32,988 nucleotides of DNA from Octopus bimaculoides (GCF_001194135.2 NC_068982.1:63813088-63846075); one strand, 5' to 3'; counted from the stretch's first letter, positions 1,700 to 32,988 are shown. Notes: generated from the sequence alone by a model not told the origin. Made by a program: numbers and translations.

Positions 1700-2450
1700 C
1701 AATTAAACCTTGGGAGAGGCATTATGCCGGTAATAAACACACGCACTAGTTCAGTCCTTTATTAATTTATATAGTTTTTTGTTAAATTATTTCATTGCAC
1801 TCTTGCAATCTCTTCAGTAACTTGTCTCTCCACTTCCATTTATTTTGAATATATGATCTGGCGTTGTTTTGGCGTTGTTTCGAAACTGTTTGGTATGAAC
1901 ATGTGAGTGTGTGCAAGCTCGTATGTGTGCACGCTCATATGTGTTCACGCACTTATGTGTTCGTGCTTATATGTAAGTATGTGCGTCCATATGTGTGTTT
2001 NNNNNNNNNNNNNNNNNNNNNNNNNNNNNNNNNNNNNNNNNNNNNNNNNNNNNNNNNNNNNNNNNNNNNNNNNNNNNNNNNNNNNNNNNNNNNNNNNNNN
2101 NNNNNNNNNNNNNNNNNNNNNNNNNNNNNNNNNNNNNNNNNNNNNNCGTGTATTTGGTGTTTAAAATTGGTTGCGTTTCAGTTATGAGGACCGACTCCTG
2201 TATTTGTCGCAACGATGCGTCACCGAGGTGTCTAGACAGGATTTCTATGCTAACTCTGTCCAGTACACCACCATGTTGTTCTTTGGCATGCTGGTAGAGC
2301 ACCGAGGTTTGTTTTTGATTATTATAGTCCCTCCAATGTTCAACACGCTCAACCAAACTTCTTGCCGTCTCACCTATGTATGTCGTGTTTCTGTTTTTAC
2401 ACTTACCATCCATACAGCTTATTTTGTAGACTACATTTCTGGCTTTGCAG
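1700..2450 (-). mobile_element. 5'-truncated Penelope-like element: GIY-YIG endonuclease plus 3' UTR
   Basis: 2450-2147 reads CKARNVVYKISCMDGKCKNRNTTYIGETARSLVERVEHWRDY...SVLYQHAKEQHGG...LRQIQESVLITETQPILNTK, a PLE-type GIY-YIG. Extension to 1700 is inferred from the flanking duplication and the hammerhead-like motif at 1781-1821. Confidence 0.8.
1781..1821 (-). ncRNA. Degenerate hammerhead-like motif in the PLE 3' region
   Basis: Minus strand gtta-CTGAAGA-g-attgca-agag-tgcaat-GAAA-taatt-taac: intact core, perfect 6-bp stem II, 4-bp stem I; stem III too short to fold canonically. Confidence 0.5.

Positions 2451-12116: not shown

Positions 12117-12186
<70 letters not shown>
12117..12186. repeat. 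(GT)n microsatellite
   Basis: Direct reading. Confidence 0.95.
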
Positions 12187-13400: not shown

Positions 13401-14394
13401 CAAAAGTTCACTGGAATTTCTCACGATAATTCCGCGACTTGCGACAATAGACCTGTGTGTGTATATGTATTCGCTTTTCACACGAAAACGATTGCGCACA
13501 TTGCTTCCATACTTGGGATACATAAATAATTTGACTTCGGATACATAGAGTCTTCAGTTTTTTTTTGTTTTTTTTATATTAAGAATAGATGGTATTGCTT
13601 TATATATATGATTCACTTCTTTAAAAAGGTTTCTCAATGTCAACTTCCGCTTTTGACGTAGCAACAGCGAAATTTTCCGTTTACATTTGCAAAACCTCTC
13701 ACTCTCTATTTTAATGTTTTCATTTCGAGTTTTAATTCGCTATTTGCAAACAACTACGATAAATTACTGAAAGAAATATTTACTAAGTTCACAAATTTAA
13801 ATATTCGGTACAAGGCTTTATTTATACGAGTTTTTTATTTCATATTTTTCATTCATTGGTTGCAATNNNNNNNNNNNNNNNNNNNNNNNNNNNNNNNNNN
13901 NNNNNNNNNNNNNNNNNNNNNNNNNNNNNNNNNNNNNNNNNNNNNNNNNNNNNNNNNNNNNNNNNNNNNNNNNNNNNNNNNNNNNNNNNNNNNNNNNNNN
14001 NNNNNNNNNNNNNNNNNNNNNNNNNNNNNNNNNNNNNNNNNNNNNNNNNNNNNNNNNNNNNNNNNNNNNNNNNNNNNNNNNNNNNNNNNNNNNNNNNNNN
14101 NNNNNNNNNNNNNNNNNNNNNNNNNNNNNNNNNNNNNNNNNNNNNNNNNNNNNNNNNNNNNNNNNNNNNNNNNNNNNNNNNNNNNNNNNNNNNNNNNNNN
14201 NNNNNNNNNNNNNNNNNNNNNNNNNNNNNNNNNNNNNNNNNNNNNNNNNNNNNNNNNNNNNNNNNNNNNNNNNNNNNNNNNNNNNNNNNNNNNNNNNNNN
14301 NNNNNNNNNNNNNNNNNNNNNNNNNNNNNNNNNNNNNNNNNNNNNNNNNNNNNNNNNNNNNNNNNNNNNNNNNNNNNNNNNNNNNNNNNNNNNN

Positions 14395-14465
<71 letters not shown>

Positions 14466-14760
14466 GGGGTGTGTTGTCATGTATACGTTCATACATAAAT
14501 ACATGGGCATACATCCTTTTCGTATGTATGCATGCGTGTGAGAGAGAGAGAGAGACAAAGAGAGAGAGAGACAAAGAGAGAGAGAGACAGAGAGAGAGAG
14601 ACAGAGAAAGAGAAAGAGAGAGACAAAGAGAGAGAGAGACAATGAGAGAGAGAGAGACAAAGAGAGAGAGCGAGACAAAGAGAGAGAGAGTGATGTCTAA
14701 GTGGCACTCACTCTCTCTCTCACACACGCACGCGCGCACACACACGCATACAAAAAAATA
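14395..14760. repeat. (GT)n followed by compound (GA)n/(GAGACAAA) and CA repeats
   Basis: Direct reading; explains the SL- and TH-rich ORFs. Confidence 0.9.
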
Positions 14761-14791
14761 TGTATGCATATTTATTTATGTATGTACGCTT

Positions 14792-16077
14792 TACACCTGG
14801 AGAAACAGTAAATGATGCAAGAGGAAACGTGGGGCTAACGCTCTTGCAAGAGTTTACAGTGTCCCTCAAGCCAAGTAGAATGCTACTACTTTCGGCTCTT
14901 TTTGCATGAAGTACGTGGTCCCAAATCATTCCAAGATTCGAGGAGGGTAAATGGTCATGTGTGTGAAATTTATAGGGAAGCATGCTATCAACAAGATTTT
15001 TTTAGAAAATGATGAGCATTGGAACCTCTCATTGACTGAAGCATCGGTATCAGATTCTCCAAGGAAACTCGGTAGCTTTTTTGCAATTATACTGAACATG
15101 TGTCAACTTGGCAGTCTCCTACAATTTTGGACGAAACATCGCGAGGACATGGCTGAGGACTAAAAGTATGCAAGCCCAGATATTGATATTCAGTTCTCTG
15201 GAACAATTTTTAACCAAGCACTGATTGAAATTTAGGATCAAGTTTTGGCTATGGACTGCCAAACTCAAACCGTCAAATTAGTGATTTAACATCAAGAGAC
15301 ATATCAAGAGAGACAAATTATGACATCACAGACTTGGCTGCATTTGTGAATGAACATGAACCTAAACTTCATCCAGAACAACGCTGTGCATATGATAAAA
15401 TTATTTCGTCAGAGTACAAAGTGGAGGAATTTTCTTTCTTGATGCTCCTGGTGACACAGGTAAAACATTTTTAACAACATTGCTCCTCTCCAAGGTAAGG
15501 CAACAAAAAGGAATTGCAATTGCTGTAGCATCGTCTGCTACCCTTCTCCCAGGAGGACGAACAATTCATTCTGCTTTTAAATTACTGCTAAACTTGGTCA
15601 CAAATGACAGTCCAATTTGTAGCATAAGCAAAGGTTCAGGTTCAGCACAAGTGTTGTGCCAATTCCACCTGATCATTTGAGATGAATGCACCATGTCACA
15701 TAGAGATGCAATTCAAGCTCTTGATAAGACCTTACAGGACATCAGAGGCAACAATAAATCTATGGGAGGAGTTACATTAGTTTTATCAGGAGACTTCAGA
15801 CAGACATTAACAGTCATTCCGAGACGAACAAGATCTGGTGAAATAAAAGCATGCATTAAATCTTCATACCTATAGAGTAAAGTACAGAAATTCTCCTTCA
15901 ATACTAACGTGCGAGCTTTATTACATGGGGACCAATGTGCAGAAAAGTTTTCAAACTGGCTCCTTCAATTAAGAAATGGAAAAGTATCATTTGATGGGAA
16001 TAGTGATATCAATTTGGCTCATATTGCTATCATGGTTAATTCCCCAGTTGAATTGAAGAACAAGGTATTTCCAGACC
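14792..16077 (+). mobile_element. Helitron RepHel fragment (PIF1-family helicase), inactive
   Basis: ALARVYSV...ECYYFRLFLHEVRGPKSF...FLENDEHW; Walker A DAPGDTGKT (15441-15467); GGRTIHSAFKL; Walker B II*DEC; MGGVTLVLSGDFRQTLTVIP; FSNWLLQLRNG. Several stops and frameshifts. Confidence 0.92.
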
Positions 16078-16810
16078 ATGATGCAATTCACTCTGTCAGA
16101 AATTTGGAAACGACATGCTTTACTATTTGGCGTTCGCGCTGGAAGTTCCAATACGAACATTACAAAGTGTTTCGGTGTCAATATGAGGACAGTGCAATCT
16201 GAGGACTTGTACTGAGAGTGATAAAAGTCAACATCATGGTGCTTGGAGTGATCACTAATGATGGCGACGTTATGCTTCCATTCATCTTCCCACGCGGCCT
16301 CACACTCAACACGGAAGCCTACATCAAGTGCCTGGAGGAGGTAGTGCTGCCCTCGATCAAGAGAGTGATTGTCTGGCAACAGGACTTTGCACCATGCCAC
16401 ACACGAAGGAGAACACAGTCATGGCTGTCAGACAATTTCTGCAAACAACACCCCTAACATCTGGCTACCGAACTCCCACACTGCAAGCCCCTTGATTATT
16501 ATATGTGGGGCGCAGTTGAGCGAGAGTCCAACAAAACTCCTTGTAATACCAAAGATGAACTGAAGGCAAGGATTATAGCAGCATTCACCGACTTAAACAA
16601 GGAGGCCGACCAGAAAAGTTGCAGGAGATTCCTAAGTCGTCTGGAGGCTGTGGTTGGAGCCAATGGCAATTTTATTGAATAAATTTACTCTTTAATATTT
16701 CAAGATATCTTTATGTAATTTTGGTAAATATATCCGTTGAAATGAGATGTCAGTGTTACTTTCATTTTTACTTTTTACATAATTTAGATGACAGTTTATT
16801 CATCGTATGT
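16078..16810 (+). mobile_element. Internally deleted maT-like (DD37D) Tc1/mariner element
   Basis: MMQFTLSEIWKRHALL... joined to VNIMVLGVITNDGDV...VWQQDFAPCH...IWLPNSHTCKPLDYYMWG...GANGNFIE* (stop 16680-16682). QQD-to-PLD spacing is 37 if a 2-nt deletion is restored. Confidence 0.85.
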
Positions 16811-17004: not shown

Positions 17005-17895
17005 TCTATCCATTGATCCCTCCTCCCACTCTCTCACCACCTCCACCTTCTTCAAACCCACGGATTCACCCCTCTACCTCAACTTTTCCTCCTCCCATCC
17101 CTTCCACACCAAACGGGCCCTTCCATTCTAGTTTCTCCGCCTCCGACACCTGTGCAGTCTAGACCAGGATTTCGAGACCCAGTTCCAGTACCTGGCTCGA
17201 TTGTTCATGCGTCGCAAGATACCCATTCACCCTTGTCTATACTGCCCTAACCCGCACTCGTCAAATCGACCGTACCACCGTTCTCTCCCCTTCTCCACAC
17301 CGACCCCCAACCGTATCTCCTTTCCCCTCCTTTTCCACTACTCCGCCCTCCCCTTTCGTCGGAGGATCATGCGGGCCTTTCATCGCCTCCAACTAGATCC
17401 CACCACTCTCCCTATTTTCCCCAACCCACCCTTGCCTTCCTTCAAACGCGCCTGTAATATACGCAATCTACTGGTCCGATACACCTTCCCCCTCCATTCC
17501 AACCCAACCCGGATCCTTCCCTTGCTTCAAATCCCGTTGCCACACCTGTCCTATCATCACTAACACCACCTCCCTCACTGGATCCAACCAGCACACCCTC
17601 TATATTAGGAACTCCTTCTCCTGCACTTCTTACAGCCTTATTTATTGCATCAGGTTCAACCTCTGCAACAAAATTTACGTTGGTCAAACGGGCCGCCGGC
17701 GAGCCGACCGGTTCACCGAACATCTAGATGTTCGTCTACGTATGAACACCCCCGTCACCCGTCATTTTCGCTTGGCCAACCACTCTACCTCAGACATTAC
17801 CGTCTTCGGTCTTGCCTAACACAATGGATCCGCCAACACTAGACTCCGCCTGGAGCAGCGTTACATTTTTACTCTACATTACTAAACCCCTTCCT
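17005..17895 (+). mobile_element. Penelope-like element: RT C-terminus, Cys-rich linker and GIY-YIG
   Basis: TSTFFKPTDSPLYLNFSSSHPFHTKRALPF*FLRLRHLCS; PPLPSFKRACNIRNLLVR; GSFPCFKSRCHTCP; LIYC...KIYVGQTGRR...RFTEHL...PVTRHF...EQRYIFTL. Stops and frameshifts present. Confidence 0.9.
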
Positions 17896-18371
17896 CTCAA
17901 TGACTGTCCCTACAATTGTCCTTAAAAAATAACATTTTACCCTGTCTTAGTTTTACTCATTTATTTATTTTTATTCAATTTTTATATCTTTTATCGTTTA
18001 TTTATCGATTTTTCATATTTTATTCTTTTATTCAGTTATTCATTTTCGTTTTTTTTTATTCGTTTATTTCTGTTTGTGTTGTATTTGTTTATTTTTATCC
18101 TTTAAATTTTTATTATTTTTTATTACTATTTTAAAAAATTTATTTTTGTCACTGATTTGTTCATATAACCTTTTCCCTTTAAGGGTTTTATTTTACCAGT
18201 TCCTACTTATCACTTGTATTATTTGTACTATTTATTATTTGTATTAATTTTTATGTCTCATATTCCTAAATCACACACCACACAACACACAACACACACC
18301 ACACACCACACACCACACAACACACACCACACAACACACACCACATACCACCCCTTCTCCCTCTCACGCAA

Positions 18372-18660
18372 GCATTATAAGTTCAGGTTTATACCTGTAA
18401 TTATTAGGGCACTGGGATATGTAACACACTGCCTAAGTACCAATCTTGAGAAATTAGGCTTCTCAAAACGAGAAAGGAGAAAGCTGATTCGGAGACTGCT
18501 GATCCAATCCGTCACTGGAACTGTAAAATTTACCAGAAATTTATCATTTATGTATATATAAAGAAGTCTAGATATGCAACTATATGCATGAGAATACTTA
18601 TATAAACACTTATACTTATACACATACTTATATAAACATATATATACATACATATTCTCA
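18372..18660 (+). mobile_element. RLE LINE 3' fragment, same family as 1407-1699 plus 2443-2565
   Basis: YKFRFIPVIIRALGYVTHCLSTNLEKLGFSKRERRKLIRRLLIQSVTGTVK, followed by the shared 3' UTR. Confidence 0.8.
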
Positions 18661-18704
18661 CACATGCGTATGTATGTGTATGTGTGTATGCATGTGTGTA
18701 TATA

Positions 18705-19250
18705 GACAACTTCTTCATGTTGTTGACCTAGTTATATTTTATTTGCAATGGGAATAGCTTCCTATCACATTTTCCTTCAAACTAATTGCTATTCACTGTG
18801 GCATCATCTCTTGGGGTTTGTTCAAAATAGCGAAGTTGCCTTAGGTTTTCAGAAGTATTAGTTTTAGAATAAAATTGTTGGTTCTTCTTTCCATGCAATA
18901 TTCCAGAGTTTAATACAAGCGTTGAAATTTCAAAATCTTATCATCTGTTTTTAGGGTTCATGTCTCTCTGCAACAAACGGTTATTGACCAAGCCAGCTTG
19001 GTATTAATGCTTATCGATCTACCTAGCAAGATGTTCCAAATTTCTGTAGTAGACGTGATTGCCATTACTAACCTTTGCCAGATTTCCTTATCGTATTCGT
19101 TTGTGTCAATTAGTTCTGTGCCAAGAGGCAAGGTTGGACACTTGTTCGGTCTTAATGTTCTCGAGTTACTGAATTCATCAAACACCAATATTACAGAGTA
19201 GTATTTGCAGGTCTTCTGTTACGCTAACAGGACTGTGTCGTTTGCGTATC
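18705..19250 (-). mobile_element. Decayed RTE-clade LINE fragment
   Basis: RYANDTVLLA (YADD-derived) at 19250-19221; EQVSN..LGTELIDTNEYDKEIWQRLVMA...ILLGRSISINTKL; CCRET*TLK; downstream EGKCD-like remnant. Confidence 0.7.
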
Positions 19251-19254
19251 TTAA

Positions 19255-19460
19255 GTGTTTGTAATGCTGTGTGTGTTGTCTACAGTGGGAACAGAGACAG
19301 TTTTCTCTATGAAGGCCTGTTTTAGTCTATCCACTGATATAGTGTCTTTACGACCATCAAAGTCTATAACGAAAAATTTATCCGTGCGTGAAAGAAAATG
19401 GAAATGATCTGCATCGTTGCGCACAAAACTTGAGTCCAAGAAGTAAAGCCTACTTCAAGG
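19255..19460 (-). mobile_element. Gypsy integrase C-terminal fragment
   Basis: SWTQVFVRNDA..FHFLSRTDKFFVIDFDGRKDTISVDRLKQAF matches the typical HVFVRxDA...VLxRxDK.F...GRxDTVSIDRLKPA tail, with the PYDGP part deleted. Confidence 0.75.
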
Positions 19461-19817
19461 CAGGGCTAGAAATGCAATTGTCAAGTAGTTAAGAGGTTTT
19501 AAACAGGAGCGATATATTCAAAATTGGTAAAACTAAAAATTGTCAAGGATAAATTAGATTTATCATTGTTACTGAATATATTAGTGTTATTTAATTTCTG
19601 AATGGTTTTGCTGCTGTTTGTTTATGTAGTTTGATTTCTTTATCTATCAGTTTCTACTAAGATAAAGACACGAGTAAAATTAATAATGGAGAAACGAAAA
19701 TAAAACATTGGAAACAGCAACGCCGCCATAACTTACGTGGAAACCATGAGCGTGCTTTCAAGGGAGACTTGAAAGTTAACGTAAGTTCGTAATCATGTAA
19801 AATAGAGTAAATATAAC

Positions 19818-20005
19818 AAATAATCCAGAATCCTTGTCCGGTACCGGATCGATCCCAAAATCTAATTAGCTCGTGCCAGTCACGAGGCCAAACATCCCCG
19901 AAAGTTTCATCCGAATCCATCCAGCGGTTCTTGAGATATCTTGTCCACGGACAAACAAACAAACACAACTGAATACAACACCCCCGCCTTTGCTAAAGTT
20001 ATAAT
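19818..20005 (-). mobile_element. Helentron-type non-autonomous element (HINE / DINE-1-like), 5' half
   Basis: Degenerate 5' subterminal repeat (19987-19999; 9/13 to the complement of ccttggcggaggt), (GTTT)n microsatellite, then a core matching 24929-24965 at 36/37. Confidence 0.7.
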
Positions 20006-20533
20006 GCAATTCCTGGAAAGAGCAAAATGATTTCGCCGCATTAGAAATATTTAGCCCTGCTGTGAAATAATTTCAGGGTTTAAAACATAAATGTAAATTT
20101 TAAAAAAAGCAATAACTGATGTATAGAACTGTATTAATTGATCCGTCACCAGCGAGAGAAGGTTGTCTTGGTTACTAAACCAAAGTGACTTTTTCACCAT
20201 GCTCTAATGATTCTGTTCCGCTACTACTGCCATCATTTCTTCATTTCTTTATCATCAATCTTACCCAGCTTTATTTTTACACTTCTCTACTACTGCTACT
20301 AACTGTTTTATACCCTTATTTTTTTTTCAATGTTTCTCCAGCGTCGCTGATACAGTCATTACAACTACCAACAGCCAACACCATCATAACTTCCACCACA
20401 CAGCCTACACTAGCCTCACACATTGATGGGTTTCATGTGGAAAACATTTCTCCAGTTGAAATATAATGCAAACAGTTTCACAATTCCGATATATATACAT
20501 ATGCATGTATATATATTCACTTTACATATAAAT

Positions 20534-20574
<41 letters not shown>

Positions 20575-20912
20575 CGCACGTGTGCATATATAAACAGAAA
20601 GTGAGAGAGATGAGACAGAGAGAGGGGAGGAGGAGCTTGGTCTGAGAGAAAACTAGAAGAGGAAGAGAGAGAGAAAGATACAGCGTTGTTTACCTAACAG
20701 AAATTTGTTTATACAAATTGGTTTATACAATTGTGGGCTGATTTGCATTTACATTTATATCTTGCATAGAGTTTCGGCATCATTAACAATTTTGATGAAG
20801 TGAATTCTATTTGAGCTGACAATGATACATTTAAGAAAGCACGAACGTTTGATGTCCCTTAAAGTTTCGGGGCCATATGTGTAGTTAAATGAAACTTAAT
20901 ATAACTCTGCTT

Positions 20913-21110
20913 ATGGCGGCGATATGGCAGAATCGTTAGCACGCCGGGCAAAATGTTTAGCGGCATTTCTTCTGTCTTTACATTCTAAGTTCAAATTCCG
21001 CCGAGGTCGACTTTGTCTTTCATCTTTTTGAGGTCGATAAAGTAAGTACCAGTTGAATACTGGAATCTATGTAACTGACTTTCTACCACCATCGAAATTG
21101 CTGGCCTGGG
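20913..21110 (+). mobile_element. SINE family B (tRNA-derived)
   Basis: A-box tggcagaatcg, B-box agttcaaattcc, then gaggtcgactttg...ggtcgataaagtaagtaccag; repeated at 25577, 27353 and 29075. Confidence 0.85.
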
Positions 21111-21114
21111 CAGC

Positions 21115-21555
21115 TTACAAGTTCAAACATCTGCTTTCTTGTGTTCTTGTAGTGACCAGTTCAGAAGTAGAAACATGGGCGTGAGTACAGGCACTGCAAC
21201 GGTGTTGTGAACAATATGCTTATTGTAAGCTGAGAGTTTTGATGACCGTATTCTCTTTATTCTTTACTCGCATTCCTTGTCCTCTTCTTATTTATGGGTC
21301 CATCATATCTGATTTTCTCATCCTGTCCAAAATGCCTTTAATTGTCACCTGACAGTAGACTTTGTATTGTCAAGCCATTTAGTTTTAGGTTTTCAGAGGA
21401 GGGTACAACTTTCCATGTTTTATTGTCAAAAATGCATATTTGGACTCACCAAATTCCATTCCAGTATCTATAGGAAGTTAAGCATTGTGGTCTAGTTGGT
21501 TTTTATGTGATTGATATTTGGCCCATACAGTTCAGGTCGTCGGCAAAGAAAATAT
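21115..21555 (-). mobile_element. RLE LINE RT and post-RT fragment
   Basis: FFADDL..LYG...DTGMEFGESKYAFLTIKHGK...LNGLTIQSL...GQDEKIRYDGPINK...HNTVAVPVLTP...LNWSLQE, with frameshifts. Confidence 0.8.
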
Positions 21556-21558
21556 GCT

Positions 21559-21591
<33 letters not shown>

Positions 21592-21692
21592 AGCTGGCTG
21601 GCTGGCTGGCTGGATGGATGGATGGATGGATGGATGGATGGATGGATGGATGGATGGATGGCTGTATTGATGGATGGATGGATGGATGGATG
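21559..21692. repeat. (TGGC)n grading into (TGGA)n microsatellite
   Basis: Direct reading. Confidence 0.95.
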
Positions 21693-21739
21693 GGGTGAGT
21701 TCCGAAAAGAAACCGATCTTCATAAAAAGTGATTGATCT

Positions 21740-22870
21740 AACTAAAATTCAATCAGCAATGCCGCTTTCGAAGTATTTCTCTCCCCTATTGATAGCCCAC
21801 TCCCAACGTCTTCCCAGTTCTGGAACACATTTTCAGTGATAGCGCACAATTCTTGCAACAAATGTCTTCAATCTTATATCATCGGAAATTGGCGACCTCT
21901 CTAGTAAAATTTCAACTTTGAGAATAAAACTCCACAGAGATTACTAAGGAGTTCGGGACAGTTGTTCGATGTACAGTGTCTCGTGCCAAATTGTCACAAA
22001 TAAGGAATGAGGCGCTGTCGTAGCGCAGCTCCCACATTTAATTGTCCATGCCTCAATCCTCTTCCTTTGCATGACTTCTTTCAAATTAATCAAGACTTCC
22101 AGGTAAAATCTTTATTGATCGCCATACTACGCGAATGACACTCATAATTAACGAGACTCTTCAGATGAAAAAGATATCACCCTCACATTTGAGGATTCTG
22201 ATGCTCAAATGCAAAAAGGATGTCGGACCACGTTTAACACAATTATGATGAATGACACTATTCCTGTCAAAAAAAAAAACTAATATCGCTTTAACATTTG
22301 AGCGACTCCGCGTATTTTTATTTTTATATTTTTTTGCTTGCGGCGATGATATTTGAACCCACCTTGACTGATTTTTGGTTTTGACATTGCACCCACTTTT
22401 ATTACACTAGAAACTTTTCATTGGCATTTTAAACAATCGAAGAACTCCTAAATGACTATCAGTCGGTTTTCTTTGTGTTTATCTATTGGCATTTCTAGGC
22501 ACAAATATTCTGCGGTAATAATGCAATTTATTTTAATGTCTCTTTTAAAATCTCGTGGCTCGATCTTTTACATGTACTCACGTCTTCATAAATTTCGCGG
22601 AAAATCAGACTACGACTTTCCCAGCATATACTTACTCAATGCGATCGTTGTCCATTTTCATGGAAATTCGCCTAGCTTTGGAATTTTCCTCCGTCGATAC
22701 CCTTCACGATTTGAAGCCTTGGTGACACTTGTGACATTGCGTCCGACTCGGACAGTCCACTCCATAAACATATTGCATCAATAGAAATGTCTCCCTGTCT
22801 TCTCCCCAATTTAAACAGAATTTCTCACAGAGAAATCGTTCATTGTTCAACTTGTGAAAAATTGCCAAGT
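21740..22870 (-). mobile_element. Near-full-length but heavily decayed mariner transposase
   Basis: KFCLNWGEDRETFLLMQYVYGVDCPSRTQC..FKS; CHEILKE; KTKNQSRWV..SPQAKK; INKDF/YLEVL..LKEVMQRKR; LFSKLK..RGRQF; FQNWE.RWEWAINRG..YFE are collinear with a mariner ORF. Confidence 0.75.
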
Positions 22871-23560
22871 ACACTAAGCATATCTTCATTCTAGCATCAA
22901 TAACTAACAAACACGATGTGATATGACTATTATTAGGTCAAAGGTCGAGCTCACCTATAGACAGCATATATATATGTGGCCACATTCACTGGCAGCTGCG
23001 CTGTTTTAAAAGTTCGTTTTGATTGAGGATAGACCTCGTATATTCAAATGAAGCAAAAAGTATTTACAAGTTACTCACTCATACTCGTGTGAGAAGTCGC
23101 CACTAGCATAACTGAAGTCATCCACGACCTAACTGTCTTTCTCGGTGCTAATGTCTAACCACTTCCTCAAGAAACCTCGTATATAGTTTTTGCTAACCAC
23201 CTCTATTTGATTGTTCTACAAAATCTACTTTCTTTTCGATCGGCACATCATTTCTATATTCTCCCCTCAATTTATTGGCTATTCGAAGAGCTGTGTAATT
23301 CATATTCCCGCAGGAAACATGGCTTCTGGACTCGTTCTTCTTTTTATTGTTCTTTTTCTTTCATTGTTGTTTCCCACGTCTATTTGCAATTCTCTCCAGC
23401 TTCCAGCTTCAGCGCATTATCAATAGACTATATGACTGTAGCAATTTTCTGGTTGTTAGCTCCAAACAGGGAGGGCGAGGCCAGTTTTTCGAGGTTTGGA
23501 AGCAGCAGTTTTTGAATTCCATTATTGTCATTGCTGACTCTACTGTCGTCTACCACACAC

Positions 23561-23579
23561 TCTCTCTCTCTTTCTCTCC

Positions 23580-23617
<38 letters not shown>

Positions 23618-23638
23618 ATCTATCTATCTTTCTCTCTT

Positions 23639-23712
<74 letters not shown>
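23561..23712. repeat. (TTTC)n/(TC)n microsatellite
   Basis: Direct reading. Confidence 0.95.
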
Positions 23713-23715
<3 letters not shown>

Positions 23716-24788
23716 ACTTTCTCAGTTTCTCTTGGTTCTCTGGGCAGAAAGCTCTTGGTGTCGCTTAGTTTCACGGATTTCTCCTCACTCCACCTATCAG
23801 TCTAACGGCTTTTCTTTCTGCGCCTCCTTTGGAGTACAACTCCACAGTAACTTTGTTGTGTTCGAGTGTCATTAGGACTTAGATGTCCATTTTTGCGCCA
23901 CCAGACAATATGCCTGTGCTCTACCGCAAATGTGACGACCAGCTGCTGGTCAACATTCTTACCAATGACCTTGGATTTGACCCGTGTATTCCACCAACCA
24001 GCCAGTGAAAAGTGGCTCGATGTGGGTCCTAAAGATCGGGAATACATTTCCATATTCCAACCCCGACTGATGGAAGTGACAACGTTCTACACATCAACCA
24101 AGACCTCCTTCAACTGTGCTTTTTGATAGCATATAAGGCATATGAAAACCCTTTTAATTTTGGGCAAGCCAGAGATATGTTATCTTTTTCCTTGTACGTT
24201 CGAGTATATAGTACTCAGGCAAAAGGTATTATTTTTCATAAAAAATATTTCTCGTGTATATTTGTCCGAAGCCGACGTATGTCTCCGTAACTCGCCGTGA
24301 TAGCAAAACTACTGCTATTACTACTCACAGCATTAGCAAATTTTTTTTTTTTTTTTTCGTTTCTCGTAGGTTTGAACGCTTGCCGTATCTCTTGTTCAGT
24401 TTTACTCATTCACTGGGATTTTTCTGTTTATCGTTCTTGAATTCTGATTTAATGTTTTCACATAATTTTGCTTTAGGGGCGTGATCGTGCTCCATGTTTG
24501 CAGTAAATACCACTCACAATTATTACAGAAAAGAAACCATAAAAAAATAATAAAATACGAGTAAACGACTGCTTACAAATATTGACTATAAAAAGAGCAA
24601 ACCTTATCTTCCCACCCAAACTAAATGGAGTCACGATGTCAGTGTTCAAAAGCTTTCTATCAACAAAATAATCTAACGAAATTTTCCCCTTTAATTACAA
24701 CGTAGTAAATACGAGCTGTACTTGACAAGTCCGTTCACCTTAAATATAACAACTACATCAATGGAACAAACATTACCATTACGACGAC

Positions 24789-24821
<33 letters not shown>

Positions 24822-24823
24822 TA

Positions 24824-24920
24824 AGGCCTTCGTAGAGAAAACTGTCCCTGTTCCCACTGCAAACGACGACACACAGCATTACAAACACGGCCCGCACATC
24901 CACCTTCACATTCCATGACT
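24824..24920 (+). mobile_element. Second copy of the Gypsy integrase tail
   Basis: 24824-24887 matches the reverse complement of 19256-19318 at 58/64; reads KAFVEKTVPVPTAN. Preceded by (TAA)n at 24789-24818. Confidence 0.75.
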
Positions 24921-24928
24921 ACCATTGA

Positions 24929-25118
24929 GATCGATCAGGTACCGGACAAGGATTCTGGATTATTTTGAGAACAGTCGGGTTCATTTTTAGTATTCTCGTT
25001 TGTGAGAGCAATAGAGTTTATTTAAGATATTCTCGTTTTAAAAATCATTTCCGGCTAATCGTTGAGAGGACGTTGGTGCTGCCTTGGCGGAGGTTTGCGC
25101 TCTCTGAGTGCTCTTGTT
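24929..25118 (+). mobile_element. HINE / DINE-1-like element, 3' half
   Basis: Core at 24929-24965; 3' subterminal repeat gccttggcggaggt (25081-25094); hairpin gcgctc-tct-gagtgc (25097-25111); ends in tcttgtt. Confidence 0.75.
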
Positions 25119-25122
25119 GTTG

Positions 25123-25180
<58 letters not shown>

Positions 25181-25578
25181 GATCCGATTGAATTTCATTT
25201 TATTTCATCTTCTTACCGGATCTCAACCAGAGACCTAAGGCACGTATATATTAGATAGAGAGAAACTTCCTGAGAATGTGGGCGATTGATGTCAACACAA
25301 TTTTTTGAGTCTCCTACATTGTTGGTTTCCAAGGGATCTGGTCAAAAAACTTGTCACTACGTTTCTTGGTCATTCCCAAGGCTCCTACAACAACACGTCC
25401 TAGATATCTCAATCGCAAGGTCTTTATATTTCGACAGTTTTTCAAATTCCTTTGCTGAGCGGTTTCTATCAGTAGGTACTGTCATTTCAATGAACAGTCA
25501 TGTTCTTTGTTTTAGGTCTCTGATGACGATATCTGATCTGTTATCATTTATTTGCTTGTGTGTATGTATCCCATTAAG
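25119..25578 (-). mobile_element. R4/Dong-like LINE 3' end: RLE domain, 3' UTR and (TAA)n tail
   Basis: NRSDIVIRDLKQRT*LFIEMTVPTDRNRSAKEFEKLSKYKDLAIEISR..VVVGALGM...TQKIVLTSIAHILRKFLSI*, followed on the same strand by (TAA)n at 25180-25126. Confidence 0.85.
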
Positions 25579-25804
25579 GTGGTGAGCTGGCAGAATCGTT
25601 AGCACACTGGACGAAATGCTTAGCAGTATTTCGCCCGTTGCTCCATTCTGAGTTCAAATTCTGCCGAGATTGACTTTACCATTCATCCTTTCGGGGTCGA
25701 TAAAATAAGTACCAGCTGAACACTGGGGTCAATGTAATCGACTCATTCCCTCCTACAGACTTGCTGCCCTTGTGGCAAAATTTGAAACCATTGTTGTTGT
25801 TGTT
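25577..25804 (+). mobile_element. SINE family B, near full length
   Basis: ggtggtgagctggcagaatcgttagc...gagttcaaattctgcc...ggggtcgataaaataagtaccag...tttgaaacca plus (TTG)n. Confidence 0.85.
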
Positions 25805-25844
25805 CATACTATTTCTAGATAAACACAAGATTATAAAATTAGGA

Positions 25845-25960
25845 CTCAGGGAGTGACCGATTATATTGACTCCAGTATTTGGCTGATGCTTTATCGACCC
25901 CGGAAGAGTCAAATGCAAAAGTGACTAGGCAAGATTTGAGTTCAAAACGTAGAAAAGAAG
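25845..25960 (-). mobile_element. SINE family B, degenerate partial copy
   Basis: Reverse complement ttttgaactcaaatc...ccggggtcgataaa...actggagtcaatataatcgg aligns to 25647-25750. Confidence 0.6.
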
Positions 25961-27352
25961 ATCGTGTGATCAGCTGGTAATCACATACGATAGCCACAAC
26001 AAAATAATAGTAAATACAGCTGTATGTCATTGAATTATGACTAATCATGAAAAACGATCAAATAAGGAGGTAGGTGTCCTGTTTAGGCACAGAGCCACAG
26101 GTAGGAATGATATTGTGTGGTTAAAGGACGGATGAATATCAAGTGACAGAATAAGAATTACTAATGTATTATATGTAATTTATGGGATAGGTCAATGTGC
26201 CTGTGACTAATGGCTATTTTACCCCAAATATTCTTTATAGCCATTCACACGCACCAAATCCGGGACGTATTTTTTACTTTAAAAATCATTTGGAAATTTT
26301 AAGCAATGCGCAGAGCATTCGAATGAAACCTCATTTGTCATTAATAATTGCATGAGCGACCAATCTTTAAGTGTATATTTTGCGTTGTTGCATATATACC
26401 TACAACCGATTTGTGTTCACGCAAACGACCTAACACTCATGAAAATGGATGGCAATTTTCTGTTATTAGAAAAAGAGGATATTTATATTTATTCCACATT
26501 GAAGAATTTATAAGTTATAGCAATGAAACAGAAGTGACTCCATGATGAAATACTTACTTATGTTTTACCCGAAATCTCGAAATGCTGCTTCACAATTTCC
26601 TGCTGTCGTTTCTGAAATTAAAACCTGTTCTAACAAAAAAAAAGGATGGATGCTCACAAGTGGAACGCTTTTAACCATCGGTCTACTCGATCAGCGTTTA
26701 CCAAGAGCTAAAGAACAGCTCGAAACCCTGTTCCAATGTAGGAACTAGTATTTAGTTATATTTTATCATGTATTCTTACTAATTGTGATTCTCCACTAAG
26801 ATCATTCAATATTTATGCTCACTGTATTTATAGATAATAGAAAGCAATTATTTACACCGGATAGTAGTTAAGTGGAATAATAAGAAACTTTGTGTCAAAT
26901 AATGTTAGTAACGAAAACATTTGCGAAATTCTTTATTAATGTGGTGACTGTGTTAGATGTAATTGTATTACATATCGGCAGCAGAATATTAGCTGAACGA
27001 TAGCAAACAGAATGAAAACAATGGAGTGTTAAACAATATTCACCAGCTTTTGTGGATTTCGTGCCACTCATCAAATTTTCTATTTAATGTATTTCAAACT
27101 AATGACACTGGACGAGTGAATAACACTTCCGAATCCTGGTTCACTGACTATAAGTTCGCATGCCTATTCCTGAGTTGAGCTATGATCCTTGATACCCTTG
27201 ATACAGGTTTTCAGACTGAAACAGCGCCACAAACAAACAAAGTAGATATTTGATCATTATAAAGATATAACGACATCGCGGTACAAATACTTCTTATGTT
27301 TCTATCATGAAGAGACAAAAGCCAATTGCACTCCTCTTTCTTGATGTACAGA

Positions 27353-27543
27353 ATATTGGTTTCAAATTTTGGCTAAAGGCCAGCAATTGCGAGGGAGGGC
27401 GTAACCGGTACTTATTTTATTGACCCCGAACGATGAAAGGCAAATTCAACCTCGGTGGAATTTGAACTCAGAATGTAAAGACGGATGAAATGCCGCTAAG
27501 CATTTTATCCGGCACAGTAACGATTCTGCCAGCTCACCGCCTT
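27353..27543 (-). mobile_element. SINE family B
   Basis: ggtacttattttattgaccccgaa...ggaatttgaactcagaatg...cgattctgccagctcaccgcc is the reverse complement of family B. Confidence 0.85.
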
Positions 27544-28173
27544 CTTAATGTACAGAATGTTGATTTCTAAATTTAGCAGGAGGCACCAAATTCTTCGACA
27601 GCAATAATTCGCCTATCACCACCCAATATGCCACAACTATCAATGATTATTGACCTTTAACATTTGTAAGACTTGGGGGCTAATTATCTGCGAAGTGCCA
27701 TCATTTCAGATGCGTGGACTTGGAACCAGGGGAAAGTAAATGTATTGCTCCACAAGGTCACCCGACAACCGTGTTGTTAATCGAACTAATGACCTTATGT
27801 TTGTGAGTATAACATGAAGTTAGGCTGTTAGGCTCACGTTTCAAATTTTGCTGATGCTTATTTTAGATCAGAACGGAAAAAATATGTATCTAAGTACTGA
27901 AAACATTTTGTATCACCATACTGCTAGCATTGGTCCACGCGCATTAACATTTCAAAAATGAACTTCATTCAAGTTTTTGTTTTTTTTTCCTTTTCTCAAA
28001 TGGTTAACTGATTAAGTTAAGAAGGATATAATTTTGACAGACTTGTGATACTGAAGTGACTGTCTATCGATTTACTACTTGAAGATATTTACTTCTTGGA
28101 TAAAATCTTATCAACTTCCGAGTCAATGTGGGAACAGCAGGTTCCCTCAGTATTTTATGTTATCTAATAGCAG

Positions 28174-29830
28174 TCAAATTTCCTTGAAATTTTTTAAGTA
28201 TGGAATGACACATTTATAAAGTGTCCGGAGAAGGATAGGATGGTCACAAATAAGACAACTTTCACATAGCTTTGTTCTATGAAAACTGATTTGAGGTTTA
28301 ACAATAATTACAACAAATCTAGTGAGAGCGGGGGTAGAGAACGTGAGAGGTAGTGCAATATTTGTATACCTGTTGTATTTCTCAATATTCACGTCAACCC
28401 TATAAACATCGTTAATAGCCGACACATGTCGACACTTTTTCCATTCACTCCTGAGTATTAAAAAAAATTACGTGCGTTCTTTTTTTCTTTCGAAGTTATC
28501 AATGTGAGCTCGATAATCTTATTACAATTTATACTTGGGTATCTAATATGCCAATTTTTCTTGGGCAATGGAACTTGATTTACAACATAGGAGAGACACC
28601 ATGTCAATTTATTGTAATAAATTTAGCTGTATGTTGTAGGTGTGGATCCTGTGCTGCAATAAAAATCATTCGGTCACGGCTGTGAGTTATGCGCTTCTCA
28701 ACCGCTGCTGAGATTCTTCTCCGTTTTAATCTTATCAGATATTAGTCTTGTAGGCTGTTTTCTTGCAACCGTCTAAGATAGAAATTTCTATCTTAGTTTT
28801 TTTTTAACAAATTTTGTTGTTATTTAGGCATTCTCTTCACATCGATCTGTTACCTTAGCCTCTCTTTTATATTTATTGGCTTCCTTGAGAACAAGTTTCT
28901 GTTCTGTTCATGTTTTATAATTATTTGTGCTTGTTTTCTTTATCCTTTACTGGATAATTTTGTAGTCCTATGATAGATTATCATAATTTTCGTGATTGTG
29001 AAGGCTCTTCCTTCTTCTATTCGTAGTAAATATAAGTTTGCTGAGGGGAGCTTTAGAAAAAATGCATTGCTCTTGATGTACTGAGTTCAAATTCCGCCAA
29101 GATCAACTTGGCCTTTCATATTTCTGGGGTCGATGAAATAAATTGCCAGTCAAGTATCGACAACACTCTTGTTTCAAACGTGCTAGCCGTGTGCCCTAAA
29201 TTAGAAACGATTGTTTTTTGTTTTGTTTTTTCTTGCTTTCTTGCCCGGTCTTGTTAATTCATTTAGTGTCCAGGCAAGAATATCATAACTATAACTTATT
29301 AATGAAGCAACTAATGTATCGATTCCTAATATTCTATTCATAATATTAAATGTTTAAAGTACTAACTTTATGTCTGTAAAATCTTTTGTTGAGTTTGTGC
29401 GTTGTACTCAGTGAAGTTCATTAAATCCTTAGTATGCGTAAGTCTATGCTTAGAATTCTCATGCCATTCATTCTTTATCTAACATTGTATTAGTGGTATT
29501 CATTCATTCTTGTTCTTTCGAACTCGCTTTAGCATATTCTTCTAAACCGAATTCCATATAATTTATTCTACTGTCTCTTCTGGGTTGTAACTTGAGGTCA
29601 TCCAGATATAAAGGATAGTTTATTGTTCCTCCCATCGCATTTATATTCGAATCCAGTTTGTTTAACATGTTAGCTAGAGATACTAAAAGGAAAGAAATAG
29701 ATAGAAGGAATCTCTTTGAAATATTCATCTAAGATATTTCGTTCTTAAAAGAAATTCGCTTTCAAAATTCCCTTTTCCTTGTTGTACCTGCAGAATTGTT
29801 TATTCATGATATGTTTGATGTATATAAACA
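28174..29830 (-). mobile_element. Decayed R4/Dong-like LINE, RT to C-terminus, interrupted by a SINE
   Basis: Collinear remnants: TINYPLYLDDLKL...MEFGLEEYAKAS; KLVL...GIDTLVASLISYSYDILAWTLNEL..KKARK; LYLLRIEEGRA; QRLRSA*LTAVTE*F.IAAQD. The 28480-28174 part (EKYNRYTNIA) is only weakly RLE-like. Confidence 0.7.
29075..29215 (+). mobile_element. SINE family B, degenerate, nested in the Dong-like LINE
   Basis: ctgagttcaaattccgccaagatcaacttggcctttcatatttctggggtcgatgaaataa...ttagaaacgatt. Confidence 0.65.
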
Positions 29831-30923
29831 AAAACACTTGCATTACGGGCTCGCAAACTCTTCTGTCTAAAGAGAATTCTTTTACCATCACCCATCCCCA
29901 CCATCCGTTATTTATCTTTATCATGTGACTCTACCCATCCCTTTCGTGCCATGTGTTCTAACTAACTCACTTTGGCAGATTTTACCTGTTTTTTTTTACA
30001 CCTCACCTCTGTGGAATTTACTACTTCTTCACATCCAGCGTATGTTTTTAAAAGAAAGTCTTTTTCTTTCTTCCGAGAGAAACGCTTTATACTCTGGTTA
30101 ACCAGTACTATTCTATCGCAATCCTCTTGCGTCACCCAGCTTCCTTTACAAGTTACTCTCCATACATAGGACACTCCTACCACAAATGCGTTGTGATTTT
30201 TTAAATAATTTTTCTCCGCTTACAGAACGCGTAAATTTTTATTTTAGTGTTTTATAGTAATTAATTTATCTCCAATTTTTCTTTTATTTTCCTCACTCCT
30301 CTAGTCGCTTTGAGCGCGCACCTTTTTCTCATTTTCGCTTCTCTTATTCATACCTTCCTTCCATGTAACAGCGTCTCACACCCACATTCTTGAACCCACT
30401 TCCGTCAAACACTCTATTCGCGCCTGCTTCCACCACCTCAATTCCACGCTTTCCTTACACACGCACACACGCACACACCAAAACCTCACAACCTCATTTA
30501 TCCGCTCCACAATATTTCTGCACTTGTAAACCTCTTCTCAAGAATATATATACACCAAAAAAAAAAAAAAACAAATACACACCCCTCTCACATATACCCC
30601 TCTCTAAATACGGTTAGACTTTACCTGAAGGCATTTCTATTGTTTGCCATGCCACTTAAAACTACAACGTCAATCCAAGAGGTTTTATAGCTATAAAGCT
30701 ATAAGATAGCATTCTAAAAACATTGTATCTATCTTGTTTATGCATACACGCGTGTGCGTATGTGTATCTGTCTGTCTGTCTGTGTGCGTGTATACGTATG
30801 CGTTACCAATGACGAGGAAACTTAAAACTAGTAGCGAAAGCATTGTACATTGTAATACCAAGATACGTCATGTTCGTTAATGAGTGACAGCTGTAAATGT
30901 TCATACATACATATATACATACA

Positions 30924-31218
30924 TTTACATATATACCAATAATAATTGGTGCAATAAGTTTTGTGAATAAATGCCTAAGTGATAATCTGGAAAAGTTGGA
31001 GTTTCTAGAAAAGGAAATCAATATGCAAACTGTAAGCAGCGCAGTTAATATATGCGTGACTTTTCCCATGGTGAGAGTGCGAATGGTTCTTGTTAGCTGC
31101 ATTCCAGCGATAAAGCTTTATGTCTTATGTTAAAAGCCGACTATTTCCTTACAAGAAAGACTTGCATTAATTAAAACAGAAGAGAACACATACATACGTA
31201 CATACATACATACATACA

Positions 31219-31247
<29 letters not shown>
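30924..31247 (+). mobile_element. Divergent RLE LINE 3' fragment ending in (CATA)n
   Basis: FTYIPIIIGAISFVNKCLSDNLEKLEF..QTVSSAVNICVTF is homologous to the 1.4-kb and 18.4-kb copies; (CATA)n at 31188-31247. Confidence 0.6.
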
Positions 31248-31250
<3 letters not shown>

Positions 31251-31299
31251 CACAAGCACACGCGCACACACACACACACACATAAATATATATATCTTT

Positions 31300-31902
31300 T
31301 ATTTTTTACTTGTTTCAGTTATTAGACTGTGACCATGCTGGGGCACCGCCTTGAACAATTATTTTAGTCGAATGAATCGACCATAGTACTTATTTTTCGT
31401 TAAGCCTAGTACTTATACGGGGACGTAAACACACCAACACCGGTTGTCAAGCAGTGGCGGTAAACTGACAAAAACAGAAACACACACACACACACACACA
31501 CACACANNNNNNNNNNNNNNNNNNNNNNNNNNNNNNNNNNNNNNNNNNNNNNNNNNNNNNNNNNNNNNNNNNNNNNNNNNNNNNNNNNNNNNNNNNNNNN
31601 NNNNNNNNNNNNNNNNNNNNNNNNNNNNNNNNNNNNNNNNNNNNNNNNNNNNNNNNNNNNNNNNNNNNNNNNNNNNNNNNNNNNNNNNNNNNNNNNNNNN
31701 NNNNNNNNNNNNNNNNNNNNNNNNNNNNNNNNNNNNNNNNNNNNNNNNNNNNNNNNNNNNNNNNATATATGACGGGCTTCTTTCAGTTTCCGTCTCACAA
31801 GGCTTTGGTCGGCCCGTGGCTAATAGTAGAAAACATTTGCCCAAGATACCACTCAGTGAGACTGAACTCGGAATCATGTGGTTGGGAAGCAAGCTTACTT
31901 AC
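31300..31902 (-). mobile_element. SINE family A, head plus internal microsatellite plus 3' domain (spans a gap)
   Basis: 31765-31902 is the reverse-complement head and 31300-31490 the 3' domain, with (CA)n and the gap between. This links the head and tail fragments seen elsewhere into one family. Confidence 0.85.
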
Positions 31903-32782: not shown

Positions 32783-32988
32783 TCTTTTACTTGTTTCAGT
32801 CATTTGACTGCAGCCATGCTGGAGCACCGCCTTTAGTCGAGCAAATCGACCCCAGATCTTATTCTTTGGAAGCCTAGTACTTATTCTATCGGTCTCTTTT
32901 GCCGAACCGCTAAGTTACGGGGACGTAAACTCACCTCCATCGGTTGTCAAGCGATGTTGGTGGGACAAACAGACACACAAACATACAC
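32783..32988 (-). mobile_element. SINE family A, 3' domain, cut by the window edge
   Basis: Reverse complement of 50-218 plus the internal segment missing there. Confidence 0.85.

Follow-up and report, generated by a model that had tools for sequence, protein, structure and literature searches.

Two loci, A on the minus strand and B on the plus strand, 5.5 kb apart, were analyzed in a 32,988-nt stretch of the Octopus bimaculoides genome (the window, below). Judging from the order and orientation of their pieces, they may derive from one old non-coding HINE copy with an insert of a Gypsy tail, later split by a small local inversion; we give this history about an even chance of being right. HINEs are the non-autonomous partners of Helentron rolling-circle transposons. 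Complementary inverted halves combined with a 65-bp inverted duplication are the signature expected of one inversion-split copy.

HINE halves and termini

The HINE label proposed in an earlier note on this DNA was confirmed by nhmmer with a profile of 24 independent full-length relatives, all from other organisms. The profile had only two matches in the whole window: the 5' half, from the left module through the central segment, at 20005-19819 of the minus strand (E 2.6e-19; E 6.9e-09 with a second profile), and the 3' half at 24932-25123 of the plus strand (E 4.5e-17). No HINE besides A and B was found in these 33 kb. The two matches are complementary, covering profile positions 7-197 (A) and 165-295 (B). 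Thus, the claim that A and B are two partial copies was not borne out; they read as complementary halves of one copy, inverted and 5.5 kb apart.

In HINEs, the subterminal inverted repeats (subTIRs) measure 11-15 bp, the 5' one lying 2-4 nt from the end. A decayed 5' subTIR, ACTTTAGCAAAGG (canonical ACCTCCGCCAAGG), was aligned to the 5' subTIR of the relatives and was correctly placed in A (19987-19999, minus strand). Its 3' counterpart in B, CCTTGGCGGAGGT (25082-25094, plus strand), is a perfect copy, the reverse complement of the relatives' 5' subTIR. The two are complementary at 9/13 positions, while the relatives mostly had 10-13/13 and the shuffled control mostly 7-9; with pairing weaker than in most relatives, halves A and B could come from different copies. 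A short inverted repeat beside the 5' subTIR no longer pairs (ACTTTA..GGGGGT in A, ACCTCC..GGAGGT in relatives), which is consistent with the decay of an old copy. The left module also contained the microsatellite (GTTT)n GTCC (19947-19966, minus strand), aligning to the (TCTG/TTTG)n block of the relatives; GTCY-type motifs are reported from Cg_HINE (PMC7492417).

At the right end, the 3' palindrome GCGCTC-TCT-GAGTGC (25097-25111, plus strand) lies at the 8-35 nt from the 3' end typical of HINEs, was predicted to form a hairpin in the DNA fold, and is conserved in relatives; the fold energy of the whole 3' end was no better than that of shuffles, and its z-score was not significant. A metagenome survey found the 3' end of this HINE type nearly invariant across distant hosts, and no match to the 3' motif was detected in the viral contigs scanned. 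The repeat (TTG)4(TTA)18 (25113-25180, plus strand, TRF) grows from the element's own 3' terminus, CTCTTGTT, which is identical in two relatives (L037 and L079). On the other side of B, a (TAA)12 microsatellite (24789-24824, plus strand, TRF) adjoins the Gypsy piece and forms an inverted match across B, 37 nt being 92% complementary to 25113-25149. These inverted microsatellites on either side of B hint at a more complex rearrangement. The flanks of the element are T-rich (…CATTAT| and |GTTGTT…) and so do not discriminate the insertion of HINEs into TT or T-rich sites, which leaves no target duplication. An open frame across the HINE gave no protein match in a word-index search, and the terminal motifs, searched as text in the literature, returned unrelated primers only.

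Inverted matches between the loci

Self-BLAST and direct alignment revealed two inverted matches between A and B: the Gypsy pieces at 24824-24888 (plus) and 19318-19255 (minus), with 59/65 identical positions, one 1-nt gap, and E 1e-17; and the cores at 24925-24965 (plus) and 19858-19818 (minus), with 39/41 identical positions and E 2e-11. The figures reported previously (58/64 for Gypsy and 36/37 for the cores) were essentially right, and so were the order and orientation: on the minus strand, locus A runs from the HINE 5' part through the core and the 369 nt of X to Gypsy, and on the plus strand, locus B runs from Gypsy through the core to the HINE 3' part. Outside these matches, further likeness between A and B was not above chance. 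The loci tile as 5' module, core, X, Gypsy tail, core, and 3' module, about 977 nt in all.

The core copy in A (19818-19858, minus strand, profile positions about 160-197) carries the palindromes GATCGATC and TCCGGTACCGGA; it is natively joined to the 5' half and broken on its 3' side, at 19817/19818. The copy in B (24925-24965, plus strand) is natively joined to the 3' half, the profile alignment continuing from the core into the 3' module, and is broken on its 5' side. The relatives carry the core as a single copy between the 5' and 3' modules, so the suggestion that it is a special bracket of the cargo did not hold. One HINE subfamily of the relatives, multicopy among the sampled metagenome contigs, natively has two cores in direct orientation about 170 nt apart (130-nt spacer). 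Interpretation of the A and B cores as the C1/C2 paralogues of this subfamily was ruled out, both aligning to C1.

The divergence was 4.9% for the core pair and 9.2% for the duplicated Gypsy pieces (G, below). Pieces 5-9% apart are old real duplicates and not one sequence assembled twice.

The Gypsy tail

The piece previously called a Gypsy integrase fragment does belong to Ty3/Gypsy pol, but it is the C-terminal tail of pol, downstream of the integrase catalytic core, and not the core itself. Its assignment was made by phmmer (46 hits, best E 2e-14), tblastn of the 46 relatives, and a tail profile (E 4e-22). A relative has RVT_1, RNase H (RT_RNaseH), Integrase_H2C2, and rve upstream of the homologous tail. 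In A, the tail occupies 19255-19448 (minus strand) and ends abruptly at 19255-19258; it shows 73% DNA identity to the O. bimaculoides locus L001, the alignment ending at 19258. Its duplicated part, G, is present in A at 19255-19318 (minus strand) and in B at 24824-24888 (plus strand), and in B the native tail continues at about 24889-24924 (plus strand), aligning to the L001 tail beyond the stop of A. Consequently, the 36 nt between Gypsy and the core in B, earlier left unlabelled, are themselves Gypsy tail according to the L001 alignment. Judged by eye, the tail of B seemed to go on at the upstream side of the (TAA)n repeat ("ING..TI"), but the tail profile did not support this.

The closest relative of the tail is an O. 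bimaculoides gene. The fragment resembles Ty3/Gypsy pol C-terminal tails such as that of O. bimaculoides LOC106874016 (identity to this octopus gene of 54-60% in amino acids and 73% in DNA) and shares with them the conserved ...DKFF.ID..GRKDT.S.DRLK.A... block; unlike them, it amounts to about 230 nt of Gypsy sequence in total, with an internal 17-codon deletion and stops. Neither reverse transcriptase, RNase H, integrase core, nor LTR was found near the tail, and tblastn matches were limited to 19505-19218 of the window. The Gypsy tail is an isolated fragment, not a complete or near-complete element. The word-index protein search gave no match for the 67-aa tail. Tail stretches are repeated 2-4 times in each of three gene models of other species (P0001, P0002, and P0004).

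Insert X

Between core and tail in A lies X (19449-19817, minus strand), an AT-rich stretch of 369 nt with an imperfect internal palindrome at 19501-19619 and no match to the HINE or Gypsy profile. It also lacked the conserved tail continuation (TRSGRxVxxP motif), and searches of the window, of 145 kb of octopus loci, and of 620 kb of relatives matched it nowhere else. Even with greatly relaxed thresholds, the profile did not support TATGGCGGCGTTGC (19730-19717) as a HINE 3' end hidden within X.

Junctions and proposed history

Outside references showed which junctions are native: in A, the 5' module to the core and upstream Gypsy to G; in B, the core to the 3' module and G to downstream Gypsy. 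Non-native junctions are core|X, X|Gypsy, and G|left flank in A, and microsatellite|G and Gypsy|core in B. With four rearrangement junctions, at least two events are needed. From the identities, extents, and junctions of these pieces we infer the following order of events and mechanisms.

In the first step, the HINE copy would have gained about 600 bp in the middle of the element, i.e., the 369 nt of X and about 230 nt of the Ty3/Gypsy pol C-terminal tail; the HINE central segment, directly duplicated over 41 bp, would have come to lie on both sides of this insert. This duplication may have come from fill-in of a staggered break or from repair synthesis re-copying the core. The resulting order would have been 5' module, core, X, Gypsy, core, and 3' module. 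In the second step, a later local inversion of about 5.6 kb (19255-24823), with one breakpoint within the Gypsy piece, would have left the 65-bp inverted duplication, so that A would run from the 5' module to Gypsy and B from Gypsy to the 3' module. One inversion undone at G gives a single contiguous composite.

The earlier note had offered one inversion with duplicated breakpoints as its alternative; the observed order cannot result from unduplicated ancestors in this way. In the staggered-break model, both duplicated pieces are adjacent at both breakpoints (PMC1885836). Here, G and the core abut in B (via the Gypsy continuation), while in A some 500 nt lie between them and Gypsy is attached by its other end. 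Since a single inversion is unable to give this order, a composite arrangement would have existed at least at this locus.

Several observations weigh against the one-copy inversion history. The history does not account for X, and we know of no simple enzymology that would produce a 41-bp direct duplication around the insert. The core pair was not more diverged than the G pair, though its duplication should be the earlier one; a comparison of 41 nt with 65 nt carries no statistical weight. A repeat split across the putative inversion junction, which would have proved the inversion, was looked for and not found.

Alternative explanations

The first alternative is a mobile HINE subfamily with captured Gypsy sequence, the window holding either one copy later split by inversion or two truncated copies; we consider it unlikely. 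The tiling of A and B into a composite with both HINE termini suits this explanation, as do the multicopy duplicated-core subfamily (130-nt spacer) in the sampled metagenome contigs and a Helitron-type helicase remnant in the same window. Helitron-type elements capture host DNA, and HINEs mix modules with unrelated interior (PMC7492417). Against it stand the decay of the 5' subTIR (9/13) and the searches for further copies, which covered octopus DNA of O. bimaculoides and O. sinensis (145 kb with seven Gypsy-tail loci; eight loci with about 159 kb in total) and 620 kb of HINE-bearing contigs of relatives. No other HINE and no copy of X or of the junctions occurred in the 145 kb of octopus DNA or the about 159 kb of Gypsy-tail contigs; likewise, the junctions, X, and this Gypsy subfamily had no second copy in the 145 kb of octopus DNA or the 620 kb of HINE contigs. 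Gypsy tails beside HINEs were not found in the relatives, nor was an autonomous Helentron in their contigs, where no long ORFs of Rep/helicase/endonuclease type lay near the elements. Neither the 145 kb of octopus DNA nor the 620 kb from relatives gave any sign of mobilization of the composite as a unit. The version with two truncated copies further demands complementary truncations and a 65-nt overlap at a distance of 5.5 kb in a family of fewer than 1 per 100 kb. Because the HINE family is sparse, it would be a large coincidence for two fragments of independent origin to lie within 5.5 kb and yet be complementary and overlapping, and separate transposition of two partial copies is very unlikely. 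That an octopus HINE subfamily took up the Gypsy pol fragment between two palindrome-rich cores and spread with it seems quite unlikely.

An inversion at the core instead of at G is also quite doubtful. Here, the HINE would be intact and cargo-free, beside tandem Gypsy pieces (G with its continuation, X, and the upstream tail with G), and one inversion would have broken the HINE core with a 41-bp stagger and, at its other end, would have cut between X and the first Gypsy piece. Undoing it likewise gives a consistent map, the core pair is less diverged, as expected of a younger duplication, and tandem Gypsy tails do occur, as in the three gene models mentioned above. However, G|left flank and microsatellite|G remain as additional separate events, the lack of the TRSGRxVxxP continuation in X means that one extra junction has to be assumed, and the total number of events exceeds that of the history with the inversion at G.

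An artefact of the draft short-read assembly, such as a locally inverted or chimeric contig, is improbable: although N gaps (seven) and microsatellites (many) interrupt the window, and B lies between long (TAA)n/(TTA)n runs poorly spanned by short reads, A and B share one gap-free 14.5-kb stretch, and misassembly of one sequence would not produce the 5-9% difference between the duplicates. About as improbable are two unrelated truncated HINEs and two unrelated Gypsy remnants close together by chance, with neither composite nor inversion. The repeat debris filling the window speaks for such a chance association; against it, the HINE density is low, HINE-profile and Gypsy-tail coverage is complementary with short overlaps, the relative orientation is identical at A and B, and identity within the overlaps is 91-95%, compared with 73% for the closest Gypsy tail elsewhere in octopus.

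Comparison with known systems

The octopus element belongs with HINE/DINE-1-like non-autonomous Helentrons (Thomas et al. 2014, PMC4067079; Cg_HINE of the Pacific oyster, PMC7492417). It has a left module with a subterminal repeat and a tetranucleotide microsatellite, a right module in which a short palindrome follows the partly complementary subterminal repeat, a T-rich 3' end, and a variable interior, and its homology by profile to over 100 elements of this kind in other organisms is significant. Unlike known HINEs, the octopus copy lies in two inverted halves, carries a decayed 5' subTIR, lacks tandem central repeats, and has a retrotransposon fragment in its interior; no autonomous partner with matching ends was identified. 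HINEs combine flanking modules with unrelated internal DNA (PMC7492417), which, like the double-core subfamily of the relatives, is a precedent for the composite step of the inversion-split history.

The presence of foreign DNA between rolling-circle terminal modules resembles Helitron-type capture (filler-DNA or read-through models). Such capture is defined by many transposed copies with common cargo, whereas one locus is known here and the HINE may already have been in place when it received the insert. To our knowledge, duplication of 41 bp at the point of insertion has not been described as a hallmark of this process.

For the inversion-split history, the nearest parallel is the staggered-break inversions (Ranz et al. 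2007, PMC1885836): the 65-nt non-repetitive Gypsy piece is inverted at both ends of the 5.6-kb segment, and each Gypsy copy ends exactly at the putative breakpoint. Unlike those inversions, a clear duplication is seen at one of the two breakpoints only, the core pair is misplaced for the model, and the inversion would be very small.

By itself, the finding is ordinary genome wear of little import. It puts a HINE-type (Helentron-associated) element on record for a cephalopod; Helentrons and octopus were mentioned together in just one paper of the literature searched for the pair. The case also shows that two short inverted matches are resolvable into a two-step local history. Were the composite multicopy, a duplicated core around cargo would help to explain the uptake of foreign DNA by rolling-circle elements. 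If it had spread as a subfamily, the core duplication would mark replication leaving and re-entering the element, the footprint of template-switch capture by a Helentron-type element.

Window and genomic setting

Seven N gaps and numerous microsatellites are present in the window, and the gap-free stretch containing both loci extends from 17005 to 31506. Rfam and tRNA scans of the window gave no matches, and ten of its ORFs were absent from the protein collection. A remnant of a Helitron-type PIF1 helicase was identified at 14839-16200 (PF05970, E 1.4e-50), the Rep motif, endonuclease, and ends being missing. Repeat debris is dense throughout the window and includes SINEs, mariner, LINE, and Penelope-like pieces.

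Paired matches and identity of the HINE halves

Window self-comparison and direct alignments confirmed two short inverted matches, claimed earlier, between locus A (minus strand) and locus B (plus strand): the core (24925–24965 (+) and 19858–19818 (−), 39/41 identical) and a Gypsy tail part, G (24824–24888 (+) and 19318–19255 (−), 59/65 identical). No further similarity between A and B was found in or around either locus. The order of pieces was also as the earlier note had given it: A reads HINE 5′ part, core, segment X (369 nt) and Gypsy on the minus strand, and B reads Gypsy, core and HINE 3′ part on the plus strand. Both loci lie within a gap-free stretch of the window (17005–31506).

To collect relatives of the HINE, a non-autonomous partner of Helentrons, the 3′ motif of B was searched for in JGI metagenome contigs; it was present in at least 120 eukaryote-like ones. 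The canonical element in these contigs was ~300 bp long. It opened with TT and a 5′ subterminal inverted repeat (subTIR), ACCTCCGCCAAGG, within which a second, short inverted repeat was nested, followed by a microsatellite (TCTG/TTTG)n, a left body that was conserved, and a central segment (…TTTTGG..GATCCGG…GGATTCTGGATCACTTT). After a short variable region came CCTTGGCGGAGGT, which is the 5′ repeat in reverse complement, then the palindrome GCGCTC-N3-GAGTGC and a T-rich end. The same architecture defines HINE/DINE-1 elements (PMC4067079; PMC7492417). A profile built from 24 full-length relatives gave exactly two matches in the window, one at A (20005–19819 (−), profile positions 7–197, E 2.6e-19) and one at B (24932–25123 (+), positions 165–295, E 4.5e-17), so the HINE label was correct. 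The core thus corresponds to profile positions ~160–197, the normal central part that the element has in single copy, and A and B are complementary HINE halves overlapping there. The 5′ subTIR of A and the 3′ subTIR of B paired at only 9/13 positions, so the element as reconstructed is no longer functional.

Across the metagenome loci (L004–L123, at least 120 eukaryote-like contigs), elements of this type were nearly invariant at the 3′ end, and contig L070 matched the octopus copy at 40/40 nt; part of this follows from how the search pattern was constructed. A multicopy HINE subfamily of ~440 bp (metagenome contigs L037, L079, L074, L019, L016, L116, and L049) natively had two direct copies of the core ~170 nt apart; the 130-nt spacer was conserved, and the 3′ end (GGCGGAGGTTTGCGCTCTCTGAGTGCTCTTGT) was the same as in the octopus copy. 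Both window cores aligned to the first core copy of this subfamily, so they are recent duplicates and not the subfamily's paralogues.

Gypsy fragment

The 67-aa translation of 19454–19254 (−) had 46 matches in a full HMMER scan (best E 2e-14); the closest relative was the annotated Octopus bimaculoides gene LOC106874016, and many other matches came from O. bimaculoides and O. sinensis. Together with SINE-like repeats 80–85% identical to many copies in octopus loci and with the window-end repeat described below, these matches place the window in octopus, most probably O. bimaculoides. In one of the matches (P0007), the same tail was preceded by RVT_1, RT_RNaseH, Integrase_H2C2, and rve; the piece is therefore the C-terminal tail of Ty3/Gypsy pol and lies beyond the integrase core. 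The Gypsy label was correct, although the piece is not the integrase core itself. When all tail matches were run against the window by tblastn, 19505–19218 was the sole region recovered; the piece, with an internal deletion of 17 codons, is an isolated fragment within the window.

In DNA alignment to octopus locus L001, Gypsy homology ended at 19258 in A and in B ran on through 24889–24923, to 2 nt before the core; the 36 nt between Gypsy and core in B, previously unlabelled, are Gypsy tail as well. The tail profile detected no Gypsy sequence left of 24824 in B. Taken with the alignment, this shows that A holds the upstream tail and G, followed by a break, and that B begins at G and proceeds into its native continuation. 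Gene models of other species (P0001, P0002, and P0004) contained the tail 2–4 times each, with a period of ~328 residues in P0001 and P0002, which suggests that the genomes concerned contain partial Gypsy units in tandem.

Junctions and rearrangement history

Junctions were classed as native or rearranged by outside references. The native ones were 5′ module to core (A), core to 3′ module (B), upstream tail to G, and G to downstream tail; core to X, G to left flank, microsatellite to G, and Gypsy to core were rearranged, and X to Gypsy was a further non-native junction. The other side of each core (the X side in A, the Gypsy side in B) is a breakpoint. Because a single inversion accounts for only two junctions, the arrangement requires two events or more.

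The locus is most readily interpreted as a single decayed HINE copy that carried an insert and was later split by a small inversion. Reversing an inversion of 19255–24823, with G as the staggered overlap, yielded one contiguous composite of ~977 nt in the order 5′ module, core, X, Gypsy tail, core, 3′ module; the composite arrangement proposed earlier holds at this locus. A HINE copy would have gained a ~600-bp insert flanked by a 41-bp direct repeat of the HINE middle, either after or before the HINE's own insertion, and the later inversion would have divided the composite into A and B. We prefer this history, giving it about an even chance of being right. The core pair was slightly less diverged than the G pair, a difference that runs opposite to the preferred event order and carries no statistical weight.

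That the composite constitutes a mobile HINE family is unlikely, even though HINEs have a modular build and acquire unrelated internal DNA (PMC7492417) and the double-core subfamily among the relatives is multicopy. No copies of the HINE, X, or the junctions were found in 145 kb from O. bimaculoides and O. sinensis (contigs encoding Gypsy tails, eight look-ups), and no Gypsy tail in 620 kb of contigs that carry HINEs in other organisms; X had no match in the latter or elsewhere in the window either. With one split copy in ~178 kb, the HINE family is thinly spread in octopus. It is therefore very unlikely that two fragments arose independently 5.5 kb apart with truncations that are complementary and overlap, which removes the reading of A and B as two partial copies. 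The locus is best read not as two copies of a mobile capture product but as a cephalopod HINE, a known kind of element with an ordinary fate.

In a mirror solution, which we regard as improbable, the inversion occurred at the core instead, and the ancestor was an intact HINE with two tandem Gypsy pieces. This leaves two G-side junctions without explanation and requires X to follow the tail natively, whereas X lacks the conserved TRSGRxVxxP continuation and is thus not the tail's native extension; on both grounds, the composite followed by inversion is preferred. The 5–9% difference between the duplicates and the lack of a gap between the loci make misassembly unlikely. An inversion with duplicated breakpoints, the earlier note's alternative, does not work as one event: when the breaks are staggered at both ends, the duplicated pieces come to lie side by side at both breakpoints (PMC1885836). 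The Gypsy piece and core do adjoin in B; in A, however, ~500 nt lie between them, and Gypsy is joined to the core by its opposite end.

Locus B is flanked by inverted microsatellites, (TAA)n…AACAATAAG at 24789–24825 and CTTGTTGTT…(TTA)n at 25113–25180 (37 nt, 92% complementary). Variant units are common to their inner ends, so two clean events may be too simple an account of the rearrangement. The right microsatellite grows from the 3′ terminus of the HINE itself; the left one may be an inverted copy or due to chance.

Other repeats in the window

A remnant of a Helitron-type Rep/helicase protein occupied 14839–16200 (+), 3–5 kb from HINE half A (PIF1-like helicase, PF05970, E 1.4e-50 on read-through). 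It was preceded by a 'LLHEVRGPKSFQD.RRVNG' linker, typical of Helitron transposases. The Rep domain was lost in a gap and microsatellite at 13867–14790. With the C-terminus cut off at ~16250, the remnant may derive from either a Helitron or a Helentron. The truncation was due to a mariner/Tc1-like transposase remnant at 16250–16690 (+), recognized by DDE-region motifs by eye, with no Pfam match; another lay at 21947–22937 (−) (weak HTH_48 match, E 0.009).

Non-LTR and Penelope-like retroelement debris (7095–7450 (−), 6371–6667 (−), 1419–1706 (+)/18374–18528 (+), 25317–25497 (−), 1967–2674 (−), and 17005–17130 (+)) included an RT fragment (RVT_1, E 1e-13), an RTE-like C-terminal ORF, a conserved retroelement tail in two copies (88% alike), and GIY-YIG-like and Penelope-like motifs seen by eye only. 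Long microsatellites, (TGGA)34, (CT)n, and (GT)n, were located at 21559–21693, 23560–23715, 12117–12186, and 14395–14463, some adjoining N gaps. SINE-like copies at 20915–21074 (+), 25576–25737 (+), 27403–27543 (−), and 29081–29141, in which ARAGORN called no tRNA, were 80–83% alike mutually and 76–85% alike to many copies in O. sinensis and O. bimaculoides loci. The window ends carried an inverted repeat pair (30–217 and 32783–32985, 83% alike) that was 93–95% identical to copies in the O. bimaculoides loci L001 and L002.
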